Shown here: positions 1,929 to 45,098 of the stretch, piece by piece
Layout: each line of letters opens with the position of its first letter
How positions within the stretch are numbered: position 1 is the first letter of the stretch
NCBI RefSeq assembly: GCF_000143415.4
Contig: NW_003314265.1
Location: 2,683,181 to 2,747,180, forward strand
DNA from: Selaginella moellendorffii
Taxonomy: Eukaryota > Plantae > Lycopodiophyta
DNA: 64,000 nucleotides
Direction of reading: 5' to 3'
The notes under the pieces: generated by a model
The model's input: the letters and a program-made list of their open reading frames with translations, nothing else
Databases searched by the model: none
Told to the model about the DNA's origin: nothing
Position numbers and translations under genes: made by a program

Positions 1929-4232
1929 CTAGAGAGGTGGAGGAGGGACATGGTCGTGCTCCGAGAGGTATGGAGTGACATGCCGGAGCTTCTTCTTGGC
2001 GAGGTCCTCGTCCAAGTTGGCCATGCTCGCCGTCCCGCCCCGGTAAGACTCCCACACGATGCTCGACAGCCTCTCCCTCACCGCCGCCGGCTCCTTGTCC
2101 CGCATCGCCTCCAGCTCCGCCTCCATGGTCTGCGGCTCCTTGAGGCTCGCAAACTCGCGCAGCAGCCGCTCGTGCACCGGCATCCAGTTCCGCGGCAGCG
2201 GCGAGAACACCGCCTCGGGTATCCGGTCCAGGAACCGGAACTCGATCGGCTCGATGCCCGTCTTCATGCCCGACACCACCGCCTGCCGGTACTGCGGCGT
2301 CCGCCCCTTGCGGTCCTTGAGCTGGTAGCTCAAGTCGGAGCTGGCCGTCTTGTAAACCTTCGCCTGCGAGCGGAGCTTGTACTTGGCGGCGTACATCTTC
2401 GCCAGCGACGATCGGAAGACGTAGCCGATGAGGCCGCAGACGGCCTTGCGATTGAAGGCGTACTTGTACCAGTCGGCGAGCGCGCGGAGGAGCTTGTTCA
2501 TGTGAGCGTTGGTCTGCGCCTGCTCGGTGTGGAAGAGCCTCATGCACGCCAGCGGGTGGTCGTCACCTTTGAGCACCCCGACCTCGCGGAGCTTGTGGAG
2601 GCAGTACTGCATGTCCGCCTTGACGCACAGGATGGTCTTGTGGAGCTTGAGCGTGCGGTACCTGTTGTCCGAGAAGAGCTGCCGCCGGGTGATGATGAGG
2701 CGGCGGCGGAAGATCTCGTGGCCCAGGAAGAAGGTCCGGCGGGTGATGTGCACCGGCGGGTCCAGGTCCGGCTCCGTGAAGAAGGTCTCGCGGCAAAAGG
2801 CACGGCAGCGCTCCACGGCGCGCAGCGCGTCGTGCCGCGTGCCGCGCACCGATATCAGGAAGTGCCCCGAGTAGCGGATGTACTCCATGCGCTTGGAGTT
2901 GTCCGACATGAGCTCCTTCCCGGCCACCACCGCCAGCTGCTGCTCCAGCCGGGGATTCGGCGGCGGGGAGCCACCGCCACCTTTTCCATCGCCACCTTCT
3001 TCATCGTCGCTGCTCGACGAGGAATCCTCGTAGTGCCGCCGCTCGATGTAAGGCGTGTTCCTGTAAGTCTCCTCGTCGTCGCTGCTGTCCGGCTCCTTCT
3101 TGTGCTGCCACAGATAATCTCCTTGCGGGGACTCGTCCGGCTCCATGCCCAAGTTTGGATCGTGGGGGCGGAAGAACTCGCTCATCTGGCCCTCCATCCA
3201 CGAATCCAGCTCGTTGAGGTAGATGTTGGCGAGGAGAGGCGCGAGCTTGTGGCAGTATCCCCACTTGGGCGACTTTTGCGCCTCGACCGGAGCGAAGCCG
3301 AGCACGGTGTCCAGCCAGAACGGGCACCGCTTGGGCTTCTTATCCTCGCTCAGCTGCTTTAGCTGGCGATACGAGACTCTCACCGGCCGCGGGATGGGAA
3401 CCTCGAGCCGGAGCCTCCCTCGGAGGCCGCTGGCGATGAGCTCGATCACCCTCGAGTCCTGGACGACGTTGGCGAGCACCCGGGTGATAAGCTCCGGCTG
3501 CGGATCGTCGTAGAGCTTGGTGAGATCGCCCTTGACGGTCCACACCACGCCGTCGAAGTTGCCCTGGATGTAGCGCAGGCACGACTGCGCGCTCCGCCCC
3601 GGCCGCCCCCCAAACGCGCGCTGCGAGAGCCTCACCTCGAACAGCGGCTCCAGCACGAAGATGAGCACCTCCTGGACGATCTCGTCCTGGAAATCGCCGC
3701 GGGGGTCGTCGCGCTGCCGGATTGGGGGCGGGTCGCTGCCGGGCTTGGGCGGCGGGAAGACGAAGATCTGCTCCTTGCCGCCCCAGGCGAAGGTGCCGTC
3801 CATGACCGCGCGCTTGAGGTTGTCGAGGTCGGCCAGGGTCTCCTGGTCGATCCGGCTGGTGGGCGCCCAGAGGCCGCGGTTGTAGCAGGATCGCTGGTAG
3901 GCGCAGTGCCAGAGGTCGGGGCTGTGGAGGAAGCGCTCCAGATTGTGGTGCGTCTTGTCGGGGCTGCGGTAGCTGCTGATCCAGAGGTAGGAGATGAGAT
4001 TGGTGGTGCGCAGCCGGGCGGCGGAGGTGCGCGGGCAGTAGTCCACCTCTTCCATGTTCTTGGCGAAGAGATAGGCGGGCTGGGGCTTGGGCTTGGGCGG
4101 GGTCTTGGCGTAGCTGCGCGTGATGACCATGGGCATCGCCTTGGCTTCCACCACTGCCTGGAGCCCTGCATTGGAATTTGGACGGCGCCATTGCCATCCG
4201 GATGCCCGCCTTGCTGCCGCTGTCGCGGCCAT
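1929..4232 (-). CDS. nMAT2: Nuclear-encoded group II intron maturase (degenerate RT plus domain X), nMAT2-like, probably mitochondrial
   Basis: Intronless 767-aa ORF with an Arg/Ala-rich presequence-like N-terminus. RT motifs are QDEIVQEVL..LEP.FE, GRPGRSAQ, KGDL and LAPLLANIYLNELD. RYSGHFLI replaces RYADD, as in plant nMAT2 (RYGGH). A domain X-like segment is present (WYKYAFNRK...SLAKMYAAKYKL). Confidence 0.88.
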   Translation of the reverse strand: MAATAAARRASGWQWRRPNSNAGLQAVVEAKAMPMVITRSYAKTPPKPKPQPAYLFAKNMEEVDYCPRTSAARLRTTNLISYLWISSYRSPDKTHHNLERFLHSPDLWHCAYQRSCYNRGLWAPTSRIDQETLADLDNLKRAVMDGTFAWGGKEQIFVFPPPKPGSDPPPIRQRDDPRGDFQDEIVQEVLIFVLEPLFEVRLSQRAFGGRPGRSAQSCLRYIQGNFDGVVWTVKGDLTKLYDDPQPELITRVLANVVQDSRVIELIASGLRGRLRLEVPIPRPVRVSYRQLKQLSEDKKPKRCPFWLDTVLGFAPVEAQKSPKWGYCHKLAPLLANIYLNELDSWMEGQMSEFFRPHDPNLGMEPDESPQGDYLWQHKKEPDSSDDEETYRNTPYIERRHYEDSSSSSDDEEGGDGKGGGGSPPPNPRLEQQLAVVAGKELMSDNSKRMEYIRYSGHFLISVRGTRHDALRAVERCRAFCRETFFTEPDLDPPVHITRRTFFLGHEIFRRRLIITRRQLFSDNRYRTLKLHKTILCVKADMQYCLHKLREVGVLKGDDHPLACMRLFHTEQAQTNAHMNKLLRALADWYKYAFNRKAVCGLIGYVFRSSLAKMYAAKYKLRSQAKVYKTASSDLSYQLKDRKGRTPQYRQAVVSGMKTGIEPIEFRFLDRIPEAVFSPLPRNWMPVHERLLREFASLKEPQTMEAELEAMRDKEPAAVRERLSSIVWESYRGGTASMANLDEDLAKKKLRHVTPYLSEHDHVPPPPL

Positions 4233-4296: not shown

Positions 4297-5529
4297 ATGG
4301 CGGCGAGGCGAGCAGTGCGTCCCTTGGAGAAGGATCTGCTGGCTGCCAGGTTCTTCAACAGGAAGCGCGAGCTGTCGGATCTTAACGACCTTTTGACGCC
4401 GGAGGTGTTGGCGGAGCCGGGGCAGATGGTGATCGTCACGGGCCCGAAAGACTCGGGTAAGACGGCGCTGCTCAGGGAGTACCGCCGCCGGCAAGCCCAT
4501 GGCGAGTTTCTGGGGGTCTCTTCCTACATCGACATGCGCGAGAAGCCCAACGTAGATCCAGCAGGCTTTGCGGCAAGCCTTCGTGGTAGCATGGTTGATA
4601 GCATGGAGCTTAAAGAAAAGCTGGGGATCGAAGTCCTGGGAGCCAACGTAGAGCACTGCAAGGGCAGTGCTAGTGAGGATGGATTGTCCATGACAATGCG
4701 CTGGCTGGAATCATACTGCTTGGAGAGACGTCATCTGGTGAGGCCGGAGCAGTGCTCCACCACCTTGGTGGATGCATACAAGCAAGGGTTTCCCACCATC
4801 TTCATCGATGAGGCGAATGCGTTAGCGGCATGGCACTCACTGCCCGATGGAGAAGCCCAGCTGGAGGCGCTCTTCCGCTTCCTTGTGCGCATCTCCAAGC
4901 AGGAGTGTGGAGCGCACATTGTGCTGGCCTCGTCTGAGAGCTTCTTCAGGAGATGGCTGCTCTCCTCGGCTGCATTCCAAGGCCACGGCGTCAGCGTCTT
5001 CAGCGTCGGCCACCTGGCTGAAGAAGAAGCCAAGGCGTTTATGCTGGAGCGCGTGCCGGCATCGTCCAAGAAGGAAGCCGAAGCTGTGTGGGATGATGTG
5101 TTCGCTCACGTTGGAGGCGCCATACTCAACTTGCACCGAGTCGTGCGCCTGGCACACCGCGCTGTGGCCACCGGCGAGCGTCTCCGGGATCGCTGGGAGC
5201 GAGAGAAGAAGCGGCTGTTCATGGATGCGGCGTACCGTGTCATGGAGGGATTTCGTCCGGAAGGGATGCGTAAGGTAGGTGTTCGAGAGCCGCCGAAGTG
5301 GAAAAAAGACGACTGGGCTCGCTTGGTGAAGAAGATGGCCGACTCCCGCGACGGTGTCATCGCGTATGACTCTCTGGCCGATGTTCCTGGCCTGGACTCG
5401 ATGATCGAGCATGATCTCCTCCAGCTCCGGGCATACAGCGACACCGAGAGGGAGATCATTGCGGATGAGTGGCCCGTTGTCATTCCAACCTCCCGGATGG
5501 CTCTTCACGTTATGAGGATCAAAGGATGA
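4297..5529 (+). CDS. P-loop ATPase of the archaeal-type ATPase_2/AAA_16 (STAND-related) family
   Basis: Intronless 410-aa ORF with N-terminal FFNRKRELSDL, Walker A GPKDSGKT, Walker B IFIDEAN, sensor-like IVLASS, and a GHLAEEEA...VGG helical region. Confidence 0.82.
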   Translation: MAARRAVRPLEKDLLAARFFNRKRELSDLNDLLTPEVLAEPGQMVIVTGPKDSGKTALLREYRRRQAHGEFLGVSSYIDMREKPNVDPAGFAASLRGSMVDSMELKEKLGIEVLGANVEHCKGSASEDGLSMTMRWLESYCLERRHLVRPEQCSTTLVDAYKQGFPTIFIDEANALAAWHSLPDGEAQLEALFRFLVRISKQECGAHIVLASSESFFRRWLLSSAAFQGHGVSVFSVGHLAEEEAKAFMLERVPASSKKEAEAVWDDVFAHVGGAILNLHRVVRLAHRAVATGERLRDRWEREKKRLFMDAAYRVMEGFRPEGMRKVGVREPPKWKKDDWARLVKKMADSRDGVIAYDSLADVPGLDSMIEHDLLQLRAYSDTEREIIADEWPVVIPTSRMALHVMRIKG

Positions 5530-5542
5530 TCTTTTAATGTTT

Positions 5543-5900
5543 TTACCTTTGGTTTATATATTCGGCGCTCCAGGAACAAGGCTCGAATCGCGTAGCCACA
5601 CGATCCCACGCTCCACCAGGTCTGTGTGACTGACGCGACGAGATGGTTTGTCTATAATGACCACTATAACATTGTGAAGTTATCTGCAAGAGGACGCTCT
5701 GAGCTTCGCCCAGTCGGCCATGCTGAGCATATAAGTTGCAGGAGACAACGTCTTGCTCTGGCATCGCATCGAACAGAAACTTTGCTTGATAGACACTACA
5801 CGGCTGCACAGCTAGTATCGACTTCCACGACGCCAGGTTGTGCGTAGGCATCTCTTCGAACACTTTCTTTCCACTCTATGCAGGAGCTTTGAGCATAGTA
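5543..5900 (-). pseudogene. Degenerate PLS-type PPR fragment
   Basis: Eroded PPR motifs (FEEMPTHNLASW, LFDAMPEQDVVSC, YAQHGRLGEAQSV) with deletions and frameshifts. Confidence 0.75.
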
Positions 5901-8667
5901 CTGGAGAGAAACCAAGAGTTTACGTCTTGTGAAGAGATTGCAGCTTTTCTCTCCCGGGCACTGTGTTCTGTCCCTTTCAGTCATTCTTTCTGCGAGTATG
6001 GTTATAAAAATGCAGCAACACTTTGTTATTAATAATGCAATAGAAGCTCTGTCATAAACCAAGCTTTAACTGGAACTTCAAAGCCCACTTGAATTGGGGC
6101 TTGTTGTTAAAATTGTAGGACACTCAAAGGTTCGCCACAAGTCTCGCAGGTGATATTGCATGCTCGATACTGGGAATGAACACCCCGCCACTAATCCAAA
6201 AAGGTGGCCTACCATCCTTAGGATAAGCTTGGGAATATCCTAGGTTATAATATGCTTTGAATCTAAGGATGATGTCATTTGGGCTCCAGGAATAATTTTG
6301 GCCACTGATATTTGCCAACTAGTACAACTTTCTATCTACTGAAATCTTGGGATCAGCTGGAGGGAGTTGGGATGGAGGTGATGGCTATGGAGATCTAGCC
6401 TTAAGAGATTTTCTTCCCTTCTTATACTCACAGAGTGGGATAGGCATACCTGCAAAAGTGATTTCTGTAACTCTTTCACAAATTTTAAGCATAGATAACA
6501 ATGCAAAGGTTAGCATGGCCCATGCTTTCATGGAAAGTGCCAAGAACTTGAGTTTTCTAGTAACTCAGCAAGATGTTTTGCATTCCAAATCCAATGGGAG
6601 GTGTTGTAATGTAAAACACTTTTGAAGGACTAGCTCAATTTAATTTGATTCAATAAAAATAAATTGTATGAGTTTTATTTTTTGCATTTATATATTTAAG
6701 TTAATTGTAATGATAAAAAGAAGTTTTTAATAATTTTTTGTGATAATATTTATTTTAAAATTCTTACTATCCTTTTAACATGAATTTCTATGTATAAGGA
6801 ACCAAAAAATTTATTTAGTGGGCAATACTGTTAATCTATGACTTGGCAGTAATAATGATATAGGCTATTGTGAATATATGCATTTGTTTAATATTTGAAT
6901 TATTTTTTGGGTTAAGCATGACAAGCTAATGGAAAATTTGAGGTGTTTATATTTTAATTTCAGTAAATGTATTAGTAAATATAGTTAACTATATGAATGT
7001 ATTTTCAAATAAAGGTAAAATAAGCTTTTTTATAAACAAGAATATATTTGTTTTCTTTCTACATGGGGCTTATAAACATTGTTTAGTGTGAAAGGTATCA
7101 TTCTCCTATAAATTTTGAAAGCACTCACATCATATTTAGCCCTATAGGGAGGAATCAAGAGCAATCACGTGAAATATGTCCCATATTTTCTAAAGTGAGG
7201 TATAGACAAAGAACAAATATATAAGTAAATAAACGTAAAAATTTGCTAATTGCTAAAGGAAATATTCACCACTTTAGATATAAAACACCCTTTGCAAGGC
7301 ATGAATCAATCCATATGTACCTCCTCATGCTCAAATTACATTTATATTTATAGTGAAATGTTTTTTAAAGAAACCCAAGTCATAATTGATAAAAACAAAT
7401 GTTATTATTTTAGTAATTTTTTTTATAAAACTAAGTAAGATAAAAACTATAGTCCAAATAGATAGAGCAATCTTTGGGAGAAATAAAGTATAACCTTACA
7501 ATTTTAATAAAATTTCCTCAAATAAATAATGAAATAGCATTTTCAAATGAAAGATTAATGTGTTACAATTTATATTTTCATTAATCAAAATTTAAATAAT
7601 AATAATATTAAACATGAAGTTTATTGAATATTTCAGGAATTCAACTATTGTGTTTCCTACTTTACCATTCACCATTCCAACTTGTTTCATTGAATGCTCT
7701 GGGTTTCGTCTTACTCCAGTCTCTTCAAACTTTTGGATCTTCTTCTTTGTCCTGTCCTTGCCCTGTTTGACCAAACACTTTACAGAAAGAACACCCCATG
7801 CAAAGATCTGAGAAACAGTCCGACCCACCGTGTGCGCGCATGTAGCTAATGTGGCCCTTCTCATACCTTTCCCTTTCCTTTCATCTTTTAGACTCCTCGA
7901 TCCTGCAGCACCCACCAAAGAAAGGCATAAACAAATCAGCAATCCACAAAGAACTCCCGTCTTCTACCAAGTTCGATCCATGGGATCCGAGCCTACCAAG
8001 CAGCAGAGATATTAAAGAAGAAACAAAAAGAGAAGAGAGAGGAAAAATAGAAGAATAAAAGAAGAAAAAAGAAGTTCACAGACCTGGCTTGCAGCTTTAG
8101 GGGGAGAGGAGACAGTCTCGCCAAGCACCACCAACATTATAAGATATCTGTTGCTGGCTTTTCGCTTGGCCCTCGCTGATGCTCATGGATTGCGTCTCTC
8201 CAATTCATTTGCCTGCGCAGACCTTGAGCTGTCGTCGCCATAGTACGGCGGTAAAAACTGCTTGACGGTCGATTGATACTGCAGCGACTGCTGCTGCTAC
8301 TGGCGCGGACAATTCAATCGAAAGTCGCAAGACCAAAGAGTGCAAACAAAAGCAAATAGAGGAATAAAAAGCGCAACGAAAAACACAAGCAGAGAAGCCC
8401 ACGCAAAAGAAAAGATAAAAAAGAGGAACTTGCCTTCTTGCTCGTTGTCCCTTGTCTTTCCCGTTGTTTCTATCCAGCTTCAGCTAACCCCGGCCCGTCC
8501 TTCCGCTTGTTTCCTTGTAGCTAGCTTTGCTCTCTGATCAGCTCTTGCGGGCGCAAGCATAGTTTGACTGAGAGGTGTGATTCAAAGTGAGACGGAAGAC
8601 GAAAACGAGATTACCTGGTTTGGCCGCCAGAGTGGAGGAAGAAAGAGCTCTCGAGCCGCGACCGCGA

Positions 8668-9082: not shown

Positions 9083-12000
9083 ATGGCGGCTCTCGTCCTC
9101 CTCGCCATCCTTGTCCTAGCGATGGCTCACGAAGGTACGGAAAAAATGCCCAGCCATGGCATCTTCTTCGCTCACACACCTCGTATTCTTGCCCAGGAAA
9201 TTCCATCTCCCTGGAGGAGGAGATGGCGATCTTGCTCCGCTTCAAGCGATCTCTCCTCCTAGCAAACCCTAGCGCGCTCCAGAGCTGGAAACCCGACGAT
9301 CGAAGCCCTTGCGAGTGGCAAGGAGTCAGCTGCGTGGCCAAGCACGTAATCTCGATCGATCTCTCCAACCAGCGCCTCACGGGCCCAATCCCCGATGACA
9401 TCGGCCTCCTCGCGGACCTGGAATCCCTGATCTTGGCTGCCAACTCCCTCAACGGCAGCATCCCGGACGTGATCGGCAACCTCGGCGGGCTAAGAACCCT
9501 AGATATCTCCAACAATTCCCTCTCGGGCTCTCTTCCAAGAATCCTCTCGCCCGGCATCCAGTTCCTCAACATCTCCTCCAACAATCTCACCGGCGCAATC
9601 CCCCCGGAGCTCTTCTCGCAATGCCAGGCGCTGGAGCGCCTGGATCTCTCCGGCAACCAGTTCCACGGATCCATCCCTAGCTCCCTGGGCGGCTGCGCGG
9701 CATTGGAGGTCTTGAGCCTGGAGAACACCAATCTCGTCGGCGAGATCCCTCCAGAGCTCGCCAGCGGCAGCCTCGCATCCCTCACGGACCTCAACCTCGC
9801 CAACAATCACCTGGTCGGATCCATCCCCGGCGGCCTCTTCGTCCCCAGCCTCCGCAACATCGATCTCTCCCTCAACAATCTCACCGGCGAGATCCCGCGG
9901 GAGATATTCCGCAGCGCCGATCTCGAGAGCCTCTTCCTCTCGCAGAACCACTTCACGCGCATCCCTCAGGAAATAGGGTTGTTGCGCTCACTGCGCTTCC
10001 TCGTTCTCGGCAGGAACAACATCACCGAGCTCCCGGCATCCATCGCCAACTGCAGCGAGCTTAGGGTTTTGATCCTCAACGAGAACCTCCTCGCGGGGGA
10101 GATCCCGGCCGCCATCGCCAAGCTCGCCAAGCTCCAGTTCCTGGTCCTCCACACCAATGGCTTCACCGGCGGGATCCCGGAGTGGATCGCCACGAGCCAT
10201 CGCCAGCTCCTCCACCTGGATCTCAGCGACAACAGCATCACCGGCGTCATCCCCAGCGGATTCAACGCCACCAGCTTGGCGAAGCTCCAGTTCTTGCTCC
10301 TGGCGGGAAATCGCCTCACGGGATCCATCCCGCCGAGCCTGGGCGAGATCTCGCAGCTCCAGTTCCTGGATCTCTCCGGGAATCGCCTCACGGGCTCCAT
10401 CCCGCCATCGCTAGGGAAGCTCACGCGATTGCTGTGGCTCATGCTCGCCAACAACAACCTCTCCGGAGCGATCCCTCGCGAGCTGGGCAATTGCTCCAGC
10501 CTCCTGTGGCTCAATGCTGCCAAGAACTCCATCGCCGGCGAGCTCCCGCCCGAGCTGGAATCCATGGGCAAGGCCGCCAAGGCGACCTTCGATGACAACA
10601 TCGCGAATCTCCCCCAGGTCCCCAAGGAGATCGGCGAGTGCGCTGTTCTTCGCCGCTGGCTGCCCAGCAACTATCCCCCATTCAGCCTCGTCTACAGGGT
10701 CCTGGATCGCGATCGCTGCCAGCAATTCTGGAACCTCCTCCTGCGCGGCAAGTTCATCTACTCGGTGTGCTCCACCATCCCCACCGAGAAATCCATGGGC
10801 TACATCCAGCTCTCGGAGAACCGCCTCTCGGGCAGCATCCCGGCGAGCTATGGCGGCATCGATCGGCTGAGCCTCCTCTTCCTCTACCAGAACCGATTGA
10901 GCGGCGCCATCCCGGGATCGCTCAGCAACCTCAAGCTCACGGGCTTGAATCTCTCGCACAACGCGCTCGAGGGCGCCATCCCGGACAGCTTCGGCCAGTT
11001 CCAGTGCCTCCAGAGCCTCGATCTGTCCAGCAACCGGCTGAGCGGCCAGATCCCCTACTCGCTCACGCGCCTCACCTCGCTCAACAAATTCAATGTCTCC
11101 TACAACCCCGGCCTCGCGGGGCCGATCCCCTTCGCCGGGCAGCTCGCCACGTTCGATCAAGACTCCTTCATCGGTGATTCCCAGCTGTGCTACGTCCCAG
11201 CGCTCACCGGCACCAGCGATCCCAGCACCGCCATCCCCTTCTGCAACGGATCTCCCAGGAACCCTAGCTCGTCGTCCTCGCGCGGTGTCCCCGCGCCAAT
11301 GCACGCCTCCACCATCCTGGGTATCAGCCTGGCGTGCGCGCTGGGCGTGATCGCCATGGGCCTGGCGGCGATCTGCTGGATGACCCGGAGAGACAGCGGC
11401 GGCGGCGGCGGCGGAGGAGGAGGAGGAGGCGGAGGATCGGCGGCGCTCGATTCGCAGGGCTTCAAGATGATGAAATCCTCGTCGGCGCGCTTCGATCACT
11501 CGGCCGCCATGGACGCCGTGTCGCTCTTCACCATGGATCTCCCCAAGCAGCTCACGTACAAGGATCTGGTGGCGGCCACGGGCAACTTCCACGACTCCAA
11601 CATCGTGGGGTGTGGCGGCTTTGGCGTGGTGTACAAGGCCCAGCTTTCCGACGGATCGACGGTGGCGATCAAGAAGCTCATCCGGGAAGGGCCAGCCGGC
11701 GAGCGGGAATTCCAGGCCGAGATGCACACCCTGGGCCACATCGTCCACGAGAATCTCGTCCCGCTCATGGGATATTCCTCGTACGGCGCTCAGATGCTGC
11801 TCGTGTACGAGCTCATGGTCAACGGCAGCGTGGAGGACTGGCTGTACGGCTGCCGCCGCCACGCTGGCGGCGCGGGCGGCCTGGATTGGCCGGCCCGGCT
11901 CGACGTGGCGATTGGTACGGCACGGGGTCTCAAGTTCTTGCACCACAGCTGCTCCCCGCCAATCATCCACCGCGACATGAAGGCTAGTAATATTCTACTT

Positions 12001-12510
12001 GACGCGGGGTTTCGGCCACGTGTCACGGACTTTGGCCTGGCCAGGGCTTTGGCCGGGCAGGAGGAGACCCACGTCAGCACCATCGTGGCCGGGACGCTGG
12101 GGTATGTCCCGCCAGAGTACTGCCAGACGTGGCGGGCTACTGTCAAGGGCGACGTGTATAGCTACGGCGTCGTCCTCCTGGAGCTCTTGTCCGGGCGGAG
12201 GCCAATGCTGGACGCTGGGAACTATATCATGGCCGGGGAGGACAGTGGTCGCGATCTTCATCACAATGTGGAGGAGTTTGAGGATCAGTGTTATAGCAAC
12301 TTGGTGGAGTGGGCGGTGGAGTGTTACCGGCGGGATCAGCTGTCGCGGCTGCTTGATCCGCTCGTGGCCAGGACGGCGGGGTCTCACGATGGTCTCGCCA
12401 AGTTCTTGAGGCTGGCGCTGGATTGCACGCAAGACGTTCCAGTGAGGAGGCCGTGCATGAGAGATGTGTGCCAGAGGCTCGAGGATATCAAAGAGGGAGG
12501 AGGGGTTTGA
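9083..12510 (+). CDS. NILR1: LRR receptor-like kinase, subfamily X, NILR1 (At1g74360)-like; join(9083..9134,9197..12510)
   Basis: Signal-peptide exon MAALVLLAILVLAMAHE, then a 62-nt GT-AG intron joining in frame to the 9223 ORF. Features are an LRRNT Cys pair, ~20 LRRs, the island domain GECAVLRRWLPSNYPPFSLVY...C...W..LL.G characteristic of NILR1, a TM helix, and an intact RD kinase (GCGGFG, VAIKKL, HRDMK, DFG, GTLGYVPPEY). Confidence 0.9.
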
Positions 12511-12707: not shown

Positions 12708-12863
12708 CTATGAGAGTCTGCTAGCAGTGCTGGATTCGAGATCTTGGCGATCTTCGTGGTGTTGGTGGTGGAGCGCGTCCTCCATTCTCATCATCTCGAG
12801 CAGGCTGTTGCTCGAGAGAGGGATCCCAGGAAGCTGGTGGAGCTGCTCCTTGTTATATGCGAG
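12708..12863 (-). pseudogene. Orphaned 3' end (51 codons plus TAG) of the membrane-protein gene, cut off by the insertion
   Basis: Reads LAYNKEQLHQLPGIPLSSNSLLEMMRMEDALHHQHHEDRQDLESSTASRLS* in frame with ...IQICHE once the element and one TSD are removed. Confidence 0.8.
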
Positions 12864-12868
12864 CTCAT

Positions 12869-13936
12869 TGAAGAGGTGTGGATACTCTTCTTCGCTGGAT
12901 ATCTACTGCTAGTGAGAAAACAAACGGGGAAAGGGCCCAATCTCCAGGGGCTGAGAGGGAAAGATGAGTGAATGAGTGTTGTGTATTACTATGAAAAAAT
13001 GAATGGAGATGGGGATTCACAACTCAAATTCCCCCCCCTTAAAAGGCAGGCAGTTCTAACTGCCAGCATATGCTAACAATTGGTATATGCTGTTGGCTTC
13101 AATTAGGTTTTTGGTTGATACACTTTGTTCCTCTGATTGAGTCCTCAATGTGAGTGTAGTTAATCTCTATCGTTTGTTGTTGCTGCTGCTCAAGTTGATA
13201 GAGGCGCTTCTGCTGTGGGAGTGTGAGCTCGTGGTTGGGGACACTGTCTAGTGGATCTGCCCCATCATCCTAGATAATATCCACACCTCTTCACTATTTC
13301 AGTTGTCCACGACCAAGTGAACCTCCCATCAAGAAGGAGTTCTATGAGCCCTTCAACCACTGGCTCAACACTCAGCTTGAGGAGATGAAGCAGATCTGCA
13401 TGCTCGAGTTGATAGAGGCAACACTTTTGCTGCGGGACTGTGAGCTCGTGGTTGGGGACACTGTCTAGTGGATCTGCCCCATTGTCCTGGAGCTCGGCTA
13501 CCTTGGCCAGGAGGGCAGTATGATCATTCTTGAGCTTCCAATAGCGGATGTTGCGCTTGTTGTACTTCAACTTGTAGGTGTGTTCGTGAGCTGCTGATGG
13601 GGTTGATGGCTACTTGGAGACGATCTTTCTGATGTCCCAGAGGTCAAAAACCTAAGCTCAGGGACTCCAGCCCTGAACCCAGGGCTGCATTGGAGCCATA
13701 GATTTGATCATGCACAGCATATACCATTTGTTAGCATATGCTAGCAGTTAGAACCGCCTGCCTTTTAAGGGGGGGAATCTGAGTTGTGGATCCCCATTTC
13801 CATTCATTGTTTTCATATCAATACACAATGAACACTCGTTCACTCATCTTTCCCTCTCAGCCCCTGGAGATTGGGCCCTTTTTGTTTTCTCACTAGCAGT
13901 AGATATCCAGCAAAGAGGAGTATCCACACCTCTTCA
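12869..13936. mobile_element. 1068-bp non-autonomous element with ~225-bp terminal inverted repeats, TG...CA ends and 5-bp TSD CTCAT
   Basis: Arms 12869-13093 and 13714-13936 are reverse complements. CTCAT occurs at 12864-12868 and 13937-13941. Removing the element restores the host ORF. Confidence 0.9.
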
Positions 13937-15158
13937 CTCATGGCAGATTTGGATGGTTTCCTCGTCAGCGGTGGAGGTGGCTGCCTGATCACGATCGAAT
14001 TCGTGCGGCTGCAGTGATGGAGTCGTGGCAGCAGGCGTGGGCTGCTCGCGAAATTGCTCGTCGCAGATCTTTGCAATTGCCAACTGAAGAAAAACAATAA
14101 AACAGAGCTTATGTCGAGAGAAACATCGTGAGAAATCTTACCTTCTCTCCGTCCGGTTGCTGCACAGCAACAATCACCTCTCTGGGATCTCCAAAACTGT
14201 GAAACTTGTCTCCGTCCGATGTGGTCGAAGGCTCCACGCCATTGCCCTCGCTCTCTCGGTCTCGTAAAACTATCATCGGCATTCCCTGCAATCCAGAATA
14301 GTTTCTTCTCGATCGATGAGCAAATAATTCGTGGAAGAATCAATCGTACCACCGGCTGCTGTGTCCTCTGATCAATGGCATTGGAGAGCGGGGACACCTG
14401 AAAACTCGGCCAGTTTGCGATGATATGGCCTTCGTCGTTGGCCATTGGCATCCGTGAGACTTTGATCACCATAACCGCGACAAAGGTCTGCGAAAGGAGA
14501 TAAATTCAAAAGTTTGAAATTAGGGTAATCCCGTACCTCGTACGACAAGAGGATGCTGTAGAGAACAAGGGGCACGGCGCAGTGGTACCTCCCGCAAGGC
14601 TGCCTCTTTGCGTAGACCGCGAGGGATAGAAGCGAGAGCAAGATTTGAGCAGCGGAGTACTGATCAATAGATCAAGCAAAGGCTATTCAACGTTGATGGA
14701 TATGAATCGTATAGCGATTTGTAAATCTTACCAGAGATGGGATGTATCCCCGCGAGCAAATGAGCGCGATTATCTCCATCGCCCGGTTGAGCATCATGGG
14801 ATACAAGTGCCATGGGAAATAGCTGGCCGTGAAAAGCTGGTAGCACAAAACTCCCACAATCTCAATCTGCCAAGACCGAATCAATCGATCGATCATCAGA
14901 ACAACTGTGGCTTAAACTTTCGCAAGAACTCACCAGGTCTACACAAACAAGGAAGAGAAAGAGCGCCACAACGTACTTGTGCTTGAGGACGACATGGTGC
15001 TGGTTATTGTTGGAGGTGGGGATGATCATATGTGGCGGCGGCGGCGGATTCAAGTGATCGTTGCCCAAGATGTGATGATCCAGATCCCATGGTACCATCC
15101 GGTTCCAAAAGCTCGCCCATCTCCGCCGAGCGCTGCCGATCCATAGAGACGGAGGCAT
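13934..15158 (-). CDS. Uncharacterised multi-pass membrane protein, 6 exons: complement(join(13934..14083,14142..14285,14350..14487,14537..14659,14732..14866,14934..15158)); 304 aa, truncated by the insertion (355 aa before it)
   Basis: Five GT-AG introns of 49-72 nt, all phase 0, join into an open frame. The protein has about four hydrophobic segments (YVVALFLFLVCVDLIEIVGVLCY; MEIIALICS; AAQILLSLLSLAVY; AVPLVLYSILLSYETFVAVMVI) and a C-terminal VIVAVQQPDGEKLAIAKI motif. Confidence 0.78.
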
Positions 15159-15448
15159 CTATCATGGATGTCTGAGCTCTACGAGTGAAAGAAGGCCGCG
15201 AGACCTGGCCTGGATCATGATCTAGACGACTGTGCTCCCGGATTCAATCGAGAGCTCCTCCTCCTCCTCCGCATTATCCCTTCCAAATTCCAATCACTCC
15301 TCCATGGATCGAAAGAGATGGCGGAGGAGACAAAGAGACGATCCTTTCCCCTTCTCTCCCCTCTGCATTGAACTGATCCTTCATCTAACAGTTAACTGCC
15401 GGGAGTCCATGTCAGCCCTAAAAGCCGCTAAGGGCTAAAACGTTTAAT

Positions 15449-15513
15449 TGGCTTCATCCAGGTTCGAACTGGAGACCTTCAGTGGACGTGATAACCAACT
15501 ACACCATGAAACC
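15449..15513 (-). pseudogene. tRNA-Val pseudogene lacking the anticodon loop
   Basis: Near-identical to 17570-17643 but missing 9 nt (tgttagact on the + strand) that cover the anticodon loop. The A- and B-boxes are intact. Confidence 0.9.
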
Positions 15514-15866
15514 ATAACAAAAGTTTTATCCTAAACTAGGATAATCTGCTAGGCTTTAAACACGGTTTACCACCCGGCCTGACAATTGCAACTAGAGCTT
15601 CTCGTCTCCAAATCTTTGCAACATACATTTAAATGATTAATATCTCCCACATGATCAAAAAAAGCAATTCATACTACAGCAAAAAATATGTCCCCCATCC
15701 AACCAATTTATATCCCGTGAGGAGTGTAAGTAAGCCGCGACCATCAGCCACTTACATTACACATTAGCCCTGGGACTTAATTTATATTCATCCTTCCAAT
15801 GTGGCATGTTGACCTAAACTACGACGTTTTACCATTTTTTTTTTTTTCTCTCCTTCCTCGAATATC

Positions 15867-16381
15867 TCACACAACACTCGCGCGGCAACAAGGACAGTGC
15901 TTACTTCGCTCGATCCACGGCTCCATGCATTCCTTGTGGAATCCGTGTCTACATGGCAGTAGCAGGCTCGTCCGCTCAATTTCTTCCAGGCAAATCGGGC
16001 AATCCGGGCTCTCATCCTTGTGCGAGAGAATTTGGAGCCAAATTTCTTTTCTGGTGGTGTTGGAGTCAGAACCATGTTGGATCCATGCCGATTTATTCTG
16101 ATCGAGCTTGTGAGAGGAAACGAGAGAAAAACAAGCTATGGCTACTTACCTCAACTCCGATGCTCGGAGCCTGGCTTCCATGATTGGGAAGAGTGTCAAG
16201 AGAACGGTTTCAAAACAAAATTCTGTACCTCGGAGGACGAGCGGGGGACTCCAATCTTCTGCGGCTGCTTGTCCCTCGGCGCCACTAAGTTGGAAGTTGA
16301 GCGACTGGATCTGTCCGAGCTCACGCACGAATGGTTGCTCGTCCGCCTTCGACGCGCAAGCTCGACACCAGGTAACATTCT
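15867..16381 (-). pseudogene. RHY1A-like RING-H2 E3 ligase pseudogene (duplicate copy)
   Basis: Same MLPGVELARRRR start and RING-H2 sequence as 17871-18511. A ~110-bp deletion removes the intron-1 acceptor and most of exon 2, and a 10-nt deletion frameshifts exon 3 before the RING. Confidence 0.85.
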
Positions 16382-16559
16382 TCCTCCTTTGTCAGGCTCC
16401 GTCGTCAAAACGAAACTATTTAGCTACCCGCCGCAAACTTCCAAGAAGCTCCACCCAAAGGGTAATACCTGGCCGTTAAAAGATTGGATTGGCAGCCACA
16501 CACACAGGCTGTGAGGGAAACCAAAACCTTACATGGGAGAAAGAGGGCGATCGAAATAA

Positions 16560-16950
16560 TGTCTCGAGAGAAAGACTGACAAATCTTGCCTTTTCTCCGT
16601 CCAGTTGCTGCACGGCAACAATCACCTCTGGGATCTCCAAGACTGTGAAACTTGTCTCCGTCCGATGTGGTCGAAGGCTCTACGCCATTGCCTTCGCTCT
16701 CTTCGTCTCGTAAAACGATCATCGGCATTCCCTACAATCCAGAAAAAGAGTTTTGATCTTTATGAACAAGCGATTTGTAAAAGATCGATCGTACCACCGG
16801 CTGCTGCGTTCTGTGATCAATGGCATTGGACGGCCAGTTTGCGATGATATGACCCTCGTTGTTGGCCATTGGCATCCGCGAAACTTTGATCACCATAATC
16901 GCGACAAAGCGCGAAATTCAAAAGTTTGAAATTAGGGCAATCTCATACCT
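16560..16950 (-). pseudogene. Partial duplicate (exons 4-5) of the membrane-protein gene
   Basis: Direct, diverged copy of ~14110-14540 (MPMIVLRDEESEGNGVEPSTTSDGDKFHS). A further inverted fragment at ~17150-17285 copies ~14556-14730. Confidence 0.85.
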
Positions 16951-17569
16951 CGCATTGCATTCAACACCCTAATGTTTCTCTCGATCTCAAACATATACTT
17001 TGCCTCCTCAATCTTCTTTCTTTCAGCACAAATAAGTATTGAGTTCTGGATTTGAGTGAAAAAGTTTATTGTGAAGAAATAATGTTAACATAACACAAAA
17101 AAAAGTCATAAATTGAATTAAAAAGTTCAAATAACTTTTAATCGTGCTGATTTGTTTCAAATTGCTATATGATTTATTTCCATCAACTTTGTGCTTGATC
17201 TATTCAAATCTTGCTCTGCTTCTATCCCTCACAATCTATGCAAAGAGGCACCCTTGTGGGAGGTACCAGCTCCTTGTTCTCTATGTTTATAAGTTAATTA
17301 CTCGATTATCTACATTTTACTTTAGTTAATGACATTATTTAAAAAATTGGGTTATAAAATTTTTGATCTCAAAGAAAACACATAACCTAAATTGGGCACT
17401 TAATTTGGGCATTTAATTAGAGTAATACGACTGAAAGAAGCAAGCTTAGGGTTAGGGCTTTTCAATTGGCGATGCATTATCCCTTAATCACTCCACGGAT
17501 TGAGAGAGATGCCTAAAATTGAAATTAATCGGCTGACCTGTGCAACACGCGTACTCAAGAAAATTCAGC

Positions 17570-17643
17570 TGGCTTCATCCAGGTTTGAACTGGAGACCTT
17601 CAGTGTGTTAGACTGACGTGATGACCAACTACACCATGAAACC
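17570..17643 (-). tRNA. trnV-AAC: tRNA-Val (anticodon AAC)
   Basis: Reverse complement GGTTTCATGGTGTAGTTGGTCATCACGTCAGTCTAACACACTGAAGGTCTCCAGTTCAAACCTGGATGAAGCCA folds as a cloverleaf and matches plant cytosolic tRNA-Val(AAC). The anticodon is at 17607-17609. Confidence 0.92.
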
Positions 17644-17870
17644 ATTAACGAATGTTTTATCTTAAAGTAGAATAATCTGATTCTGCTTGAGAATATTCCT
17701 CACACGGTTTGGTGTTGAAAACTCTTGTCTGTTGCTCCGTGAGGAGCGTAAGTAAGCCGCGGCCATCAGCCTGGGACTTAATTTATATTCCCTCCAACAA
17801 GGCATGTGGACATGTTGACCTAAAGTACGACGTTTTACCAATTTTTTTTTTCTCTCCTTCCTCGAATATC

Positions 17871-18511
17871 TCACACAACACTCGCGCGGCAACAAGGACA
17901 GTGATTACTTCGCTCGATCCACGGCTTTATGCATTCCTTGTGGAATCCGTGTCTACACGGCAGTAGCAGGCTCGTCCGCCCAATTTCTTCCAGGCAAATC
18001 GGGCAATCCGGCCTCTCATCCTTGTGCGAGAGAATTTGGAGCTTGCCACTGCCAAATTTCTTTTTTGTTGGTGTTGGAGTAGGAACCGTGTTGGATCCAT
18101 GCCGAGTTATTCTGCGCATTCGCTCGAGCTTGTGAGAGGAAACGAGAGAAAAACAACTTACCTCAACTCCGGTGCTCGGAGCCTGGCTTCCAACCTCTCC
18201 CGAGCTTCGTTTGCTGCGGTTCTGGATGTCTCGTCTCTTGGGTGGAAACGATATCGCGCTTGCAGTGTTGCTAGAGCGTTAGCAGCTGCTTCTTCAATCT
18301 ATGATTTGGAAGAGTGTCAGGAGAACGATTTCAAAACAAGATTTTGTACCTCGGAGGACGTGCGGGGGACTCCAATCTTCTGCTGCTGCCGCTGCTGCTG
18401 CTTGTCCCTCGTCGCCACTATGTTGGAAGTCGAGCGACTGGATCTCTCCGAGCTCACGCACGAATAGTTGCTCGTCCGCCTTCGACGCGCAAGCTCGACA
18501 CCAGGTAACAT
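17871..18511 (-). CDS. RHY1A: RING-H2 E3 ubiquitin ligase, RHY1A-like; complement(join(17871..18111,18162..18298,18350..18511)), 179 aa
   Basis: N-terminal MLPGVELARRRR, an EARERLEARLR helix, and C-terminal CPICLEE...LPCRHGFHKECIKPWIERSNHCPCCR. Two GT-AG introns give an open frame. Confidence 0.87.
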
Positions 18512-18880
18512 TCTTCCTCCTTTGTCAGGCTTCGCTCGTCAAATCGAGACTATTTAGCTACCCCGCAGCAAACTTCCAAGAAGCTCCACCAAAGGTTAAT
18601 ATCTGGCCGTTAAAAGGATTGGATTGGCAGCCACACACACAGGCTGTGAGGCAAACCAAAACCTTACCTGCGAGAAAGAGCGATCGAAATAATGCTTGGA
18701 CTTTTATGTCCCAACGTCGCTTCAGCTTAGCACTAACGAAGAAAGAAAACGCAAAGAAAATCAGCGATTTAGAATCTCAAATCTGAAGGGAAATTGACAG
18801 TGTAGAAAACGATATTTTGCGTCTTTGGAATCATTCTAGACAAAGCAGATCAGGAGAATGACAAGACGAACCTGGTTTGA

Positions 18881-42623: not shown

Positions 42624-45098
42624 TGTAAGTGACTAAATTTTTCATTCTACTTTAGTCATTTAACCACACTTTTGACCATTTGGAAGAGTCTCACTCACAA
42701 CTTCCATAAGTTTTATTTTGGACTTAGGGACTTGCTAGTCTTGAGAATGGCATCCTTCAACCTTTGCACTTAGTCCAAGTGCTCCACATGTCCGATCCCA
42801 TGACCGACACCCAAAGGTATCACTGACATATTAGCATGTTAGTACGCTAAAGCCATGCCCATTCTTCTTTGTCACACTAGTGATCCAACACCACCTATAT
42901 GTAAGCAACCAAAGGGAACGACTCGAGAGACGATCCATGGGGTTCAAATATAGAGGGAAAGGGCCCATGAATAAGAGTGCACCCCCTTTTCCAATCGGTT
43001 AAGGGTCTTGGGATAGTTGGAGTTAAGCGTCCTTGGGTTTGAATAGTACTGGGCTGGGTGACCTCCCGGGAAGTCCAAACTCAGGAGCTTACATTTGGTA
43101 TCAGAGCGGTCTCGGGTCCGACTCTGTTAGTTGGCTAGGGGAATCACACCACATGTTAATTGACATCTGGCTGGTCCAATTTGCTCCTGCTGGGCTCGAC
43201 CCGAGGGGTAGGGTGTCAAGAGAGCGGGGCTCTCGGGAGAGTTGCGGCTCTCAGCTTCCGTTCACGAGGGCGTGAACTTGCAGGGAAGCGTGGTGGATTG
43301 TAAGCAACCAAAGGGAACGACTCGAGAGACGATCCATGGGGTTCAAATATAGAGGGAAAGGGCCCATGAATAAGAGTGCACCCCCTTTTCCAATCGGTTA
43401 AGGGTCTTGGGATAGTTGGAGTTAAGCGTCCTTGGGTTTGAATAGTATTGGGCTGGGTGACCTCCCGGGAAGTCCAAACTCAGAAGCTTACATTTGGTAT
43501 CAGAGCGGTCTCGAGTCCGACTCTGTTGGTTGGCTAGGGGAATCACACCACATGTTAATTGACATCTGGCTGGTCCAATTTGCTCCTGCTGGGCTCGACC
43601 CGAGGGGTAGGGTGTCAAGAGAGCGGGGCTTTCGGGAGAGTTGCGGCTCTCAGCTTCCGTTCACGAGGGCATGAACTTGCAAGGAAGCGTGGTGGATTGT
43701 AAGCAACCAAAGGGAACGACTCGAGAGACAATCCATGGGGTTCAAATATAGAGGGAAAGGGCCCATGAATAAGAGTGCACCCCCTTTTCCAATCGGTTAA
43801 GGGTCTTGGGATAGTTGGAGTTAAGTGTCCTTGGGTTTGAATAGTACTGGGCTGGGTGACCTCCCGGGAAGTCCAAACTCAAGAGCTTACACTATATCAC
43901 AGTTCTGTTTCTCAAAGATTAGGTCATTTGTCCATGAGAGATCATCCTAGATCCACTCTTTAACATCCTTAGGATGCCTATAAACATGGGGAACAACTTT
44001 CCCCAATATCCTTTTTTCGGTCCCTACCAAGTCCTTTTTTATCCATGGATGTGTTCACTAACATTGCCACTAGGTCAAGGCTTACAGACTTGATCACTAA
44101 GTCCCATTGTCCTCTGGGACTTCCTTACTAAATGATTGTATCCTTGGGAACTACACTAAAGGACTGTTCCTTTTCCTTTTCACAATCCAGGACTTTAAGA
44201 CAACATTTTAGAACACTATGGCCCTATGCAAGCCTCATAGGTACTTTCCCCACCTTCTGCCTTTGGGTGCTTTAGCCATGGGGCTAGAGCGAGGTTTTGT
44301 TGAGCTGCTAGGTATCCAAGTAGGTAGTGCCACCCACACTTGGATTGGGAACATCAGCCATTCGATCTTTCGGGGGAGTTAAAGCTGGCTTTTGAACACT
44401 TCACCAAACTACCCCACTTGTCAATTCGTACTCACTCTAGCGTTAGATTCCTCACTAGATATATCATCACGCAACACATAGGCATAACCTTCTTGGGTCA
44501 CACTAGCTTTTCCTAGCCAAATTGGCTCCACTAGGGTCCAACCCCCACACTCTCCCTACTATACTTTTGGAACCCCCTACAGGCCCCCCCTTGGGGGGCG
44601 ATCGCTTTGGGCTTTCACCCAACAACCTGTATTAGTATTCAGACTTAGACTTAGACTTGGACTCGGACTCAGACTTAGACTTGGTCTTGGTCTCAGACTC
44701 GACCTTTATCTTAGTCTCGATTTCAGTCTCAATCTCGGTCTTGGTTTCATCTTGGACTTCATCTCGGATCCATCTCGGACTCCATCTTGGACTCCATCTC
44801 GGACTCCATCTCGGCTCCATCTTGGGTCCATCTCGGACTCCATCTCAGATCTATCTCAAACTTCTCAACACTTCCATATGTCATGCGTTGGTCTTTTTAT
44901 GTCCCTTTTTTAGAGATTCATTTATTGCTCGTCGAGCTTGTTCCTCGAGCCCTTCATTGGGAGTTCCACTCCCGCTCTCAAATGTTCAAGTTGAAGCTTT
45001 TAGTCCAAATATGTTACTCTCGTTTGGCTTTCGCTTCAACCAGTATTATGTGGCACCTTTTCAACTCCACTTTGGGGTTTAGGGATTTGTGTCTCACA
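42624..45098 (-). mobile_element. Family A 3' LTR, interrupted by the Cassandra array; degenerate internal sequence continues to ~45600
   Basis: TG...CA termini and the reverse complement of 59720-61377. A PPT-like GGGTGGTGGAGT lies on the minus strand at 45099-45110. Confidence 0.82.
42900..43891 (+). mobile_element. Cassandra-type TRIM tandem array (LTR-int-LTR-int-LTR) with a 5S rRNA-derived domain in each LTR
   Basis: 194-bp LTRs at 42900-43093, 43299-43492 and 43698-43891 (TG...CA), period 399 bp. PBS TGGTATCAGAGC follows LTR1 and LTR2, and a PPT precedes LTR2 and LTR3. TSD CTATA at 42895-42899 and 43892-43896. The 5S-like segment is AGTTAAGCGTCCTTGGG...TAGTACTGGGCTGGGTGACCTCCCGGGAAGTCC. 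Confidence 0.95.

Follow-up and report, generated by a model that had tools for sequence, protein, structure and literature searches.

The window analysed here is a 64-kb stretch of Selaginella moellendorffii DNA. At positions 12869-13936, it carries an insertion of 1068 bp with TG...CA ends, the outer sequence of which starts TGAAGAGGTGTGGATA and recurs at the other terminus as its reverse complement in 16 of 16 positions. The pentamer CTCAT abuts the insertion on both sides, at 12864-12868 on the left and at 13937-13941 on the right. The insertion, its ends and the CTCAT duplication are thus present as an earlier, sequence-only reading of this DNA had described them.

The empty site and the inserting enzyme

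The sequence-only reading had pointed to the other haplotype of the same plant as the place to look for an empty site, and the site is present there. On L001 (GL377656.1), the left flank, a single pentamer (CTCGT) and the right flank follow one another with no insert between them. The 5-bp target-site duplication (TSD) is thereby proven independently, and the insertion is hemizygous, residing on one of the two chromosome copies. The 64-kb window itself contains no paralogous empty site, as the duplicated flank begins only at 14114. On the haplotype that carries it, the insertion costs a predicted gene its final 46 codons.

The length of the TSD decides the first alternative, in which the element belongs to a common plant superfamily with terminal inverted repeats (TIRs) and its TSD has been misread. 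The TSD measures 8 bp in hAT, 9-11 bp in Mutator-like, 3 bp in CACTA, 3 bp (TWA) in PIF/Harbinger and 2 bp (TA) in Tc1/mariner elements. TIRs of about 200-300 bp do recall Mutator-like elements, but the empty site gives a duplication of exactly 5 bp, which is not TA, TWA, 8 bp or 9-11 bp, and the termini are not those of CACTA. Such an identity is therefore ruled out for hAT, Mutator-like, CACTA, PIF/Harbinger and Tc1/mariner elements alike, in line with the earlier view that these superfamilies do not fit.

TG...CA ends together with a 5-bp TSD are what a retroviral-type DDE integrase leaves behind, and the enzyme that inserted the 1068-bp element was probably an integrase of this kind. With LTR-type 3′ ends at both of its termini, the element would show that two suitable CA ends suffice for integration and that a complete retroelement is not required. 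A derivative of a DIRS-like retroelement, inserted by a tyrosine recombinase, would also have inverted terminal repeats, and the internal copy of the terminal sequence described below loosely recalls the internal complementary region of such elements. That copy, however, corresponds to one terminus only and contains no junction of both termini, and neither a recombinase nor a reverse transcriptase is present. DIRS elements are not known to make a TSD, and in our view the proven 5-bp TSD therefore refutes this identity.

The terminal modules and the centre of the element

The two ends of the element are inverted copies of a family module of about 293 bp, which consists of a G-run followed by a unit ending in CCTCTTCA. 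The right arm (13638-13936, plus strand) is a full copy, homologous to positions 5427-5710 and to the reverse complement of positions 5736-6032 at a second locus, L008. The left arm (12869-13135, minus strand) is the inverted copy. Over the well-conserved outer 225 nt, the arms share 207 matches, with 11 mismatches and 4 small indels. The inverted homology continues inward from there to 13135 on the left and to 13638 on the right, with three extra indels in the inner part, so that the arms measure 267 and 299 bp, respectively. The arms of about 225 bp previously proposed are thus genuinely homologous, but their extent had been set too short. Folded back on each other, the arms would form a hairpin with a stem of about 270 bp, which may serve as an input for small-RNA silencing.

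Within the right arm, the polypurine-tract-like purine tract AAGGGGGGGAA (13767-13777, plus strand) lies 2 nt before TGAGTTGTGGAT, the start of an LTR-like terminal unit of 157 bp (13780-13936, plus strand) that runs from TGAGTTGTGGAT to ATCCACACCTCTTCA. The left arm mirrors this arrangement: a C-run on the plus strand (13029-13040), the counterpart of the purine tract or G-run, accompanies a minus-strand unit at 12869-13026, the outer end of which, TGAAGAGG, is the reverse complement of the module terminus CCTCTTCA. The tract and the mirrored units had been noticed before at exactly these positions. The distance from the G-run to the end of the module is 151-165 nt in four of the four family copies, namely the two arms and the two copies at L008. 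In contrast, the dinucleotide that opens the unit varies, as it is TG in both arms of the window but CG and CA in the L008 copies. Because this TG is not kept at L008, the unit is delimited less reliably on its inner side than on its outer side.

A local standard for this junction is provided by a genuine TRIM at 56233-56908 (minus strand) of the window. It has an A-A-G-run with the LTR beginning a few nucleotides further on, and its LTR has inverted ends. The arm junction, ttttaaGGGGGGGaatc and then TGAG, shares its design with the PPT/LTR junction of this TRIM, and the unit of 157 bp compares with an LTR of 164 bp. This likeness bears out the former impression that the arms resemble a polypurine tract plus an LTR. 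At the sequence level, the terminal unit is not similar to either of the two TRIM families of the window.

The arms differ mainly by transitions (9 of the 11 mismatches, five at CG/CHG), which fits the decay of two originally identical arms. Their divergence is 5.0%, as compared to a pooled non-coding haplotype divergence of 2.2% (P about 0.01) and to 6.4% in the adjacent left flank.

Between the arms lies a non-palindromic, non-coding centre of about 502 bp (13136-13637, plus strand), with no likeness to any protein or RNA family. It contains a direct repeat in two copies that are 87.5% identical (13183-13274 and 13396-13491, both on the plus strand), the first of which includes a G-rich run and a motif resembling the unit start, a likeness that is suggestive only. 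A third copy of the terminal 16-mer is found at 13278-13293 (plus strand) in the orientation of the right end; the 16-mer occurs exactly three times in the 64 kb. Besides the two terminal modules, the interior thus holds this 16-nt fragment and one doubtful mini-copy. The hexamer GTGGAT occurs six times in the element, against 0.5 expected. No homology exists between 13094-13182 and 13294-13395.

Searches for coding capacity were uniformly negative. The element has no long open reading frame in any of the six frames and no match in Pfam or Rfam. A 114-aa internal reading frame has no relatives among 1.84 billion representatives, and the one candidate, P0121, proved to be a tandem-repeat artefact. 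For the open frame through both terminal units, there were no protein candidates, the eligible proteins being those of 34-107 aa only. A 24-mer taken from the arms had 0 matches in a metagenome scan, and the 64-kb window contains no reading frame for a transposase or an integrase.

The sequence-only reading had also found no primer-binding site (PBS), and this stands. The TRIMs of the window have a PBS type of which the best match in the element has 3 mismatches in 12, with 0.8 matches of this quality expected by chance, and no TGG occurs within 60 nt beyond the internal terminus. A stretch complementary to tRNA-Val at 13091-13109 (15/19; reached in 0.55% of shuffles) was dropped, because the four-copy alignment shows that this 19-mer is a composite spanning two deletion junctions in the inward continuation of the left arm.

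The structure of the arms and the centre also bears on the possibility that the insertion began as an ordinary TRIM or solo structure, integrated in the normal way, and acquired its inverted form only afterwards at the site, by inversion, gene conversion, or nested insertion and deletion. The diverged internal duplication (87.5%) and the stray terminal 16-mer do show a history of rearrangement, and recombination-driven TRIM derivatives are common (bioRxiv 10.64898/2026.03.01.708851). However, the left arm extends through the G-run and takes in over 100 bp of the module sequence upstream of this run, which argues that a 3′ end was duplicated and that no 5′ LTR was flipped. In addition, the perfect 16-bp inverted outer ends abut an intact TSD opposite a clean empty site, and the element contains no additional TSDs. 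The insertion is not older than the split of the haplotypes, which leaves little time for multiple rearrangements. We therefore regard a rearrangement in place as improbable.

A second locus and the origin of the insertion

How common is the inverted layout in this family? About 200 kb of sequence from S. moellendorffii was sampled for further copies, as the sequence-only reading had proposed. The second locus L008 is likewise inverted, but it is inside-out and lacks a TSD, and the sample contains no copy with direct LTRs, PBS and PPT. This outcome corresponds to neither of those that the sequence-only reading had foreseen for its refuting test. At L008, the module occurs at 5427-5710 and again, as its reverse complement, at 5736-6032. 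The symmetry of this palindrome runs 4 nt past the module end, around a loop of 17 nt. This is the signature of a fold-back copy and indicates that fold-back copying does occur in the module family. After the module end come TT and then TGG..., which is the canonical position of a PBS; the spacer (5713-5730) matched neither of the two tRNAs compared with it. The centre of L008 shares nothing with the region of the internal 16-mer in the window beyond the 16-mer itself, and Rfam returned only generic hairpin miRNA models for the palindrome, far below threshold.

We consider it about an even chance (roughly 0.5) that the insertion is a composite derived from an LTR retrotransposon, which arose through a strand switch in reverse transcription and was integrated by an enzyme supplied in trans. 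The integrase, the RNA/cDNA origin and the strand-switch step are the parts of this reading that we infer. The source would be a small LTR retrotransposon of a TRIM-like lineage, and the insertion itself would be a non-coding, non-autonomous product. Its two ends would be outward-facing, inverted copies of the 3′-terminal module of the family, that is, the G-run plus the LTR-like unit ending in CA. During reverse transcription in a particle provided by another element, the growing DNA strand may have switched template or folded back, which would yield a linear DNA molecule whose two termini both carry an LTR 3′ end, one of these in the place of a 5′ LTR. The integrase would require just two CA 3′ ends, which it would join to staggered chromosomal cuts 5 bp apart, and the repair of these cuts would generate the CTCAT duplication. 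With no PBS, no direct LTR pair and no open reading frame, the 1068-bp copy can most likely not retrotranspose any further.

Several features favour this LTR-derived origin: the empty site, the TG...CA ends matching in 16 of 16 positions, the TRIM-like junction of G-run and unit, the G-run in all four copies, and the TGG at the canonical PBS position of L008. The abundance of TRIMs in the host, the inverted pairs of maize, complex insertions within a single TSD, the scarcity of MITEs, the fold-back at L008 and the transition-type decay of the arms point the same way. Against it counts that the sole unbiased second locus is also inverted, which would be unexpected if inverted copies were rare accidents. 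The TG is not conserved, and the module could equally be a single terminal repeat of about 293 bp with the G-run as an internal motif. The lack of a PBS in the element, the excess of arm divergence over the pooled haplotype divergence, though not over that of the adjacent left flank, and the lack of an ordinary family member in about 200 kb count against it as well, and no reverse-transcriptase or integrase partner was identified.

The main rival is a TIR DNA transposon that is non-autonomous and belongs to an integrase-related superfamily, either Ginger2/TDD-like or a relative of GingerRoot, which is a possible though rather doubtful identity. The arms of about 270-300 bp would then be true TIRs with repeated subterminal binding motifs, and a DDE transposase encoded elsewhere would cut and paste the element, generating the 5-bp TSD. 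Long TIRs, TG...CA ends and a 5-bp TSD are in agreement with this alternative, as are the inverted pairs seen at both family loci, and the excess of GTGGAT and the internal terminal 16-mer resemble subterminal repeats. Arms already diverged at the time of insertion would suit the arm divergence relative to that of the haplotypes. The presence of GingerRoot in the genus, its TG...CA minority type and the 5-bp TSDs of TDD-4/5, described below, speak for this alternative as well, and the TSD, TIRs and ends of GingerRoot and the termini of Ginger1 and Ginger2 speak against it. On the other hand, the window contains no transposase, and the inside-out structure of L008 and its lack of a TSD mean that this locus is no transposon insertion. 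It is left unexplained why, as in the local TRIMs, a G-run immediately precedes a unit whose ends are inverted in the manner of an LTR, and TIR-type MITEs are nearly absent from the S. moellendorffii genome, with 73 copies (PMC3964958).

A further alternative, which we consider unlikely, is a small S. moellendorffii family, active in recent times, whose members normally have the inverted layout, with LTR-derived ends that act as TIRs and an integrase-type enzyme that moves the unit. If such a family were demonstrated, it would inform the long-debated relationship between LTR retrotransposons and integrase-bearing DNA transposons. It would represent, in a plant, a living intermediate that connects LTR retrotransposons with DNA transposons of the Ginger type, and the inside-out palindrome of L008 would be a trace of replication or end-joining intermediates.

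Comparison with known systems

The filled and empty alleles in one individual make this locus a clean natural case of an integrase-type insertion in which both ends are LTR 3′ ends. It also provides a concrete case for the origin of complex and inverted TRIM structures, which published surveys have left open.

Among DNA transposons, GingerRoot is an integrase-related element of Selaginella lepidophylla (Cerbin et al. 2019, PMC6839031), and the main text of that paper does not mention S. moellendorffii. GingerRoot shares with the element the host genus, long TIRs, integrase-type ends (TG...CA as a minority type, in 5 of 77 copies), a short TSD in the range of integrases, and non-coding copies or copies that often carry foreign fragments. 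It differs in its TSD (6 bp, as compared to 5 bp), its TIRs (100-150 bp, as compared to 267-299 bp), its mostly TA...TA ends and its length (3.9-12.9 kb, as compared to 1068 bp). The Ginger2/TDD group has TG...CA ends, TIRs of 50-180 bp and a Gypsy-integrase-like transposase, and within it TDD-4/5 alone produce 5-bp TSDs, while the metazoan members have 4-bp TSDs (Bao et al. 2010, PMC2836005). Ginger1 duplicates 4 bp (CCGG/CCGT), whereas the element duplicates the 5 bp CTCAT, and the termini of both Ginger1 and Ginger2 are TGTNR, whereas those of the element are TGAAG (PMC2836005). Reports of Ginger, Ginger2/TDD included, from plants are lacking, and no transposase is known for the family of the element.

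Among LTR-type systems, the rice TLI loci are tandem LTR-retrotransposon insertions with a single TSD that are polymorphic between genomes (PMC11899658). Like the element, they combine a complex LTR structure with one 5-bp TSD, are absent at the orthologous site and are read as single insertions. The TLI loci are direct head-to-tail arrays of coding elements, whereas the 1068-bp element is inverted and non-coding. TRIMs are abundant in the S. moellendorffii genome, with 8 subfamilies, 10,158 copies and complex arrays (PMC4717578). The TRIMs, including the two families of the window (42900-43891 and 56233-56908), resemble the element in a length below 1.5 kb, the lack of coding capacity, the 5-bp TSD, the TG...CA ends, and a short terminal unit (157 bp in the element, 164-194 bp in the TRIMs) with inverted ends and a G-run just upstream. 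They differ in having direct terminal repeats and a PBS, where the element has inverted repeats and no PBS.

In R-L4I2 of the maize Zma-SMART family, two inverted TRIMs lie inside one 5-bp TSD (Gao et al. 2016, PMC4717578). R-L4I2 and the element are both small, non-coding structures with inverted LTR-type repeats, inserted as a unit within one 5-bp TSD in a TRIM-rich host. R-L4I2 comprises four LTRs and two full internal regions, and each of these regions has a PBS and a PPT of its own. The element, in contrast, consists of only two terminal modules, which are both 3′ ends, around a non-palindromic centre, and it lacks a PBS. The sequence-only reading had weighed a retroelement derivative against a Ginger-like element and held that neither is a standard plant category. 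Both alternatives are retained here, but that statement went too far, as inverted TRIM pairs within one TSD (PMC4717578) and GingerRoot in Selaginella (PMC6839031) are already published. Most likely, the insertion arose as a by-product when retrotransposon copying went astray, and it is a structural variant of a rare type that does not define a new element class.

The insertion and its empty site

The element spans 1068 bp (12869–13936); it starts with TGAAGAGGTGTGGATA, ends with the exact reverse complement of this sequence, and is directly bounded by CTCAT on both sides (12864–12868 and 13937–13941). The window, part of scaffold GL377569.1 (window coordinate + 2,683,180), is colinear at about 97% identity with GL377656.1 (L001), which therefore represents the second haplotype of the sequenced individual. 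In L001, the left and right flanks of the element abut over a single pentamer, CTCGT. This exact empty site proves a hemizygous insertion that entered as a single 1068-bp piece, with a target-site duplication (TSD) of 5 bp. The TG...CA ends, the length and the exact CTCAT duplication proposed by the sequence-only reading are thus confirmed, and the search that it suggested for an empty allele was successful. TSDs of 8, 9–11, 3 and 2 bp are thereby excluded, and membership of a common plant TIR superfamily, which that reading had already disfavored, is highly improbable. An ordinary TRIM rearranged in place is also unlikely. With two CA-3′ ends joined at positions 5 bp apart, the chemistry of the insertion points to a retroviral-type DDE enzyme; we regard a DIRS origin as very improbable.

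The empty haplotype carries a 351-aa hypothetical gene model (L001 13619–14993, minus strand) whose last coding ORF includes the insertion point; its product has no Pfam domain, and the gene may not be real. The counterpart of this model occupies 12711–14298 (minus strand) in the window, where the scaffold annotation calls no gene across the element; only the empty haplotype has the model annotated. In the filled allele, ...IQICHE is followed by a stop codon from the end of the element, while the empty allele continues for 46 more residues.

The neighboring intronless ORF (9223–12510) encodes a 1095-aa LRR receptor kinase, 95% identical to S. moellendorffii SELMODRAFT_128869 with about 21 scattered substitutions. 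Its exact product is absent from the protein collection, and the RefSeq member of its cluster, P0122, maps to L001. About 21 residues distinguish this product from that of the L001 allele, whose GenBank model (P0001) is short of 29 residues that form continuous ORF in the window. On the other side, a tandem duplication of about 2.2–2.4 kb (14114–16561 and 16564–18694; 80–90% identity) contains RING-finger-like ORFs and tRNA-Val(AAC) genes, one intact (17568–17644) and one degenerate (near 15446); L001 has two intact tRNA-Val genes (15284–15359 and 17338–17414). A nuclear maturase-like gene (1929–4232, minus strand), an intronless ORF of 767 aa that encodes a type II intron maturase domain, is of equal length on both haplotypes.

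Architecture of the arms and the local TRIMs

Over their outer 225 nt, the two arms share 207 matching positions, with 11 mismatches and four small indels. The arms had been described as about 225 bp long, which holds for this outer part, but a four-copy alignment and a gap-tolerant self-alignment extend the homology inward, to 12869–13135 on the left and 13638–13936 on the right, around a non-palindromic center of about 502 bp. The inward continuation of the left arm follows the family module, a repeat of about 293 bp, with three more indels of 15, 34 and 16 bp. As the sequence-only reading had observed, the purine tract AAGGGGGGGAA (13767–13777) lies 2 nt ahead of TGAGTTGTGGAT, with its mirror image on the left arm. 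The arms differ by 5.0% (11/218), as compared to 2.2% for pooled non-coding sequence between the haplotypes (P about 0.01), the adjoining left flank itself differing by 6.4%. Transitions account for nine of the 11 differences, five of them falling at CG/CHG.

The window contains exactly three copies of the terminal 16-mer, two at the element ends and one at 13278–13293, and a 92–96-bp block is duplicated within the element at 87.5% identity. The 64-kb window holds no second copy. Scanning all frames revealed no long ORF, Pfam and Rfam gave no matches, and the longest open stretch has no relative among 1.84 billion protein representatives. If transcribed throughout, the element is predicted to give a long hairpin RNA with fully paired arms (−601 kcal/mol), which might conceivably serve as a small-RNA source.

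The window contains two genuine TRIMs. The first (42900–43891) is a tandem array in which three LTRs of 194 bp each (TGTAAGC...GCTTACA) alternate with two internal regions of 205 bp, at 98% identity; primer-binding sites (PBSs) directly follow LTR1 and LTR2, and the 5-bp TSD is CTATA. Every LTR includes a 5S-rRNA-like segment (Rfam RF00001; 26–34 bits, up to 33.7, just below the 38-bit cut-off), and the array is accordingly Cassandra-type, here in a lycophyte. The second (56233–56908, minus strand; 676 bp) has 164-bp LTRs with 9-bp inverted ends, a PBS, and the polypurine tract (PPT) A-A-G(8) a few nt ahead of the 3′ LTR. Its relatives lie at 52044–52204 and 53297–53808, within a larger inverted duplication (about 52.0–59.7 kb), and at a further locus, L005, a Cassandra-type copy is nested in a copy of this family (2851–3937). 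The arm junction of the element, ttttaaGGGGGGGaatc followed by TGAG..., has the same design as the PPT/LTR junction of the second TRIM. This common design is the best internal support for the PPT and LTR-like label; the unit has no sequence similarity to either TRIM family.

The element contains no PBS, in agreement with the sequence-only reading. The PBS motif of the local TRIMs is absent (best match with 3 mismatches in 12; 0.8 such matches expected by chance). A 19-mer at 13091–13109 matches the complement of the tRNA-Val 3′ end at 15 of 19 positions (0.55% of shuffles), but it spans two indel junctions of the left arm and is thus a chance composite. We withdrew this candidate, together with the layout PBS, internal region, PPT and LTR in which an inverted 3′ end replaces the 5′ LTR.

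A second, inside-out palindrome

How are other copies of the family arranged? We sampled six S. moellendorffii loci around PPR paralogs (137 kb), in which both TRIM families of the window recurred, thereby calibrating the sample. The family of the element was seen once, at L008 (GL377691.1) 5427–6032, where two copies of the module, 73–84% identical to the window arms, face each other over a 25-nt spacer. The inverted pairing is therefore found again, but inside-out as compared to the window element, with the CA ends at the center. The symmetry reaches 4 nt past the module ends and encloses a 17-nt loop; the two outer ends terminate at one homologous position and lack a TSD. These features are the signature of a fold-back copy, rather than of two independent insertions. 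The spacer opens with TT-TGG..., the position of a PBS, and matches neither tRNA compared (Val, Glu).

The 157-bp unit (13780–13936, mirrored at 12869–13026) opens with TG in both window arms, as originally described, but with CG and CA in the L008 copies. This makes the inner LTR boundary uncertain, and a single terminal repeat of about 293 bp would be another way to read the entire module. A fragment of the second TRIM type abuts the L008 palindrome (6040–6094), and a Cassandra-type solo LTR lies 3 kb away (2059–2252); this gene-rich sample is dense in TRIM debris.

Origin and comparison with known systems

We favor, with a probability of roughly one half, an LTR-retrotransposon-derived composite. 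It would have arisen when a growing strand switched or folded back in the course of reverse transcription, giving a molecule with inverted ends that an integrase supplied in trans would then have inserted. This reading is preferred because the element shares the PPT/LTR-like design with the local TRIMs, and because its family forms a fold-back palindrome at L008. A non-autonomous Ginger/GingerRoot-like TIR element is the main, less likely rival: both known family loci are inverted pairs and terminal motifs are repeated in the element, but it departs from each described group in one or more of TSD, TIR length and termini. The TSD is the 4-bp CCGG in Ginger1 and 4 bp in Ginger2 (5 bp in TDD-4/5). 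In S. lepidophylla, the integrase-related DNA transposon GingerRoot makes 6-bp TSDs and is bounded by 100–150-bp TIRs, mostly with TA...TA ends (PMC6839031).

The composite origin is further favored because the genome is TRIM-rich and MITE-poor: in S. moellendorffii, the 10,158 TRIM copies belong to 8 subfamilies and make up 1.19% of the genome (PMC4717578), and MITEs number only 73 copies in a screen limited to known TSD types and to elements <800 bp (PMC3964958). Moreover, inverted and complex TRIM insertions have already been published. Five of the 8 subfamilies form complex arrays, and 6 of 93 complex arrays in maize consist of two inverted TRIMs inside one 5-bp TSD (PMC4717578). LTR-element insertions of complex structure that carry one TSD and are polymorphic between genomes are also on record, with their mechanism left open (PMC11899658), and rearranged LTR elements are, by the accepted view, products of template switching (bioRxiv 10.64898/2026.03.01.708851).
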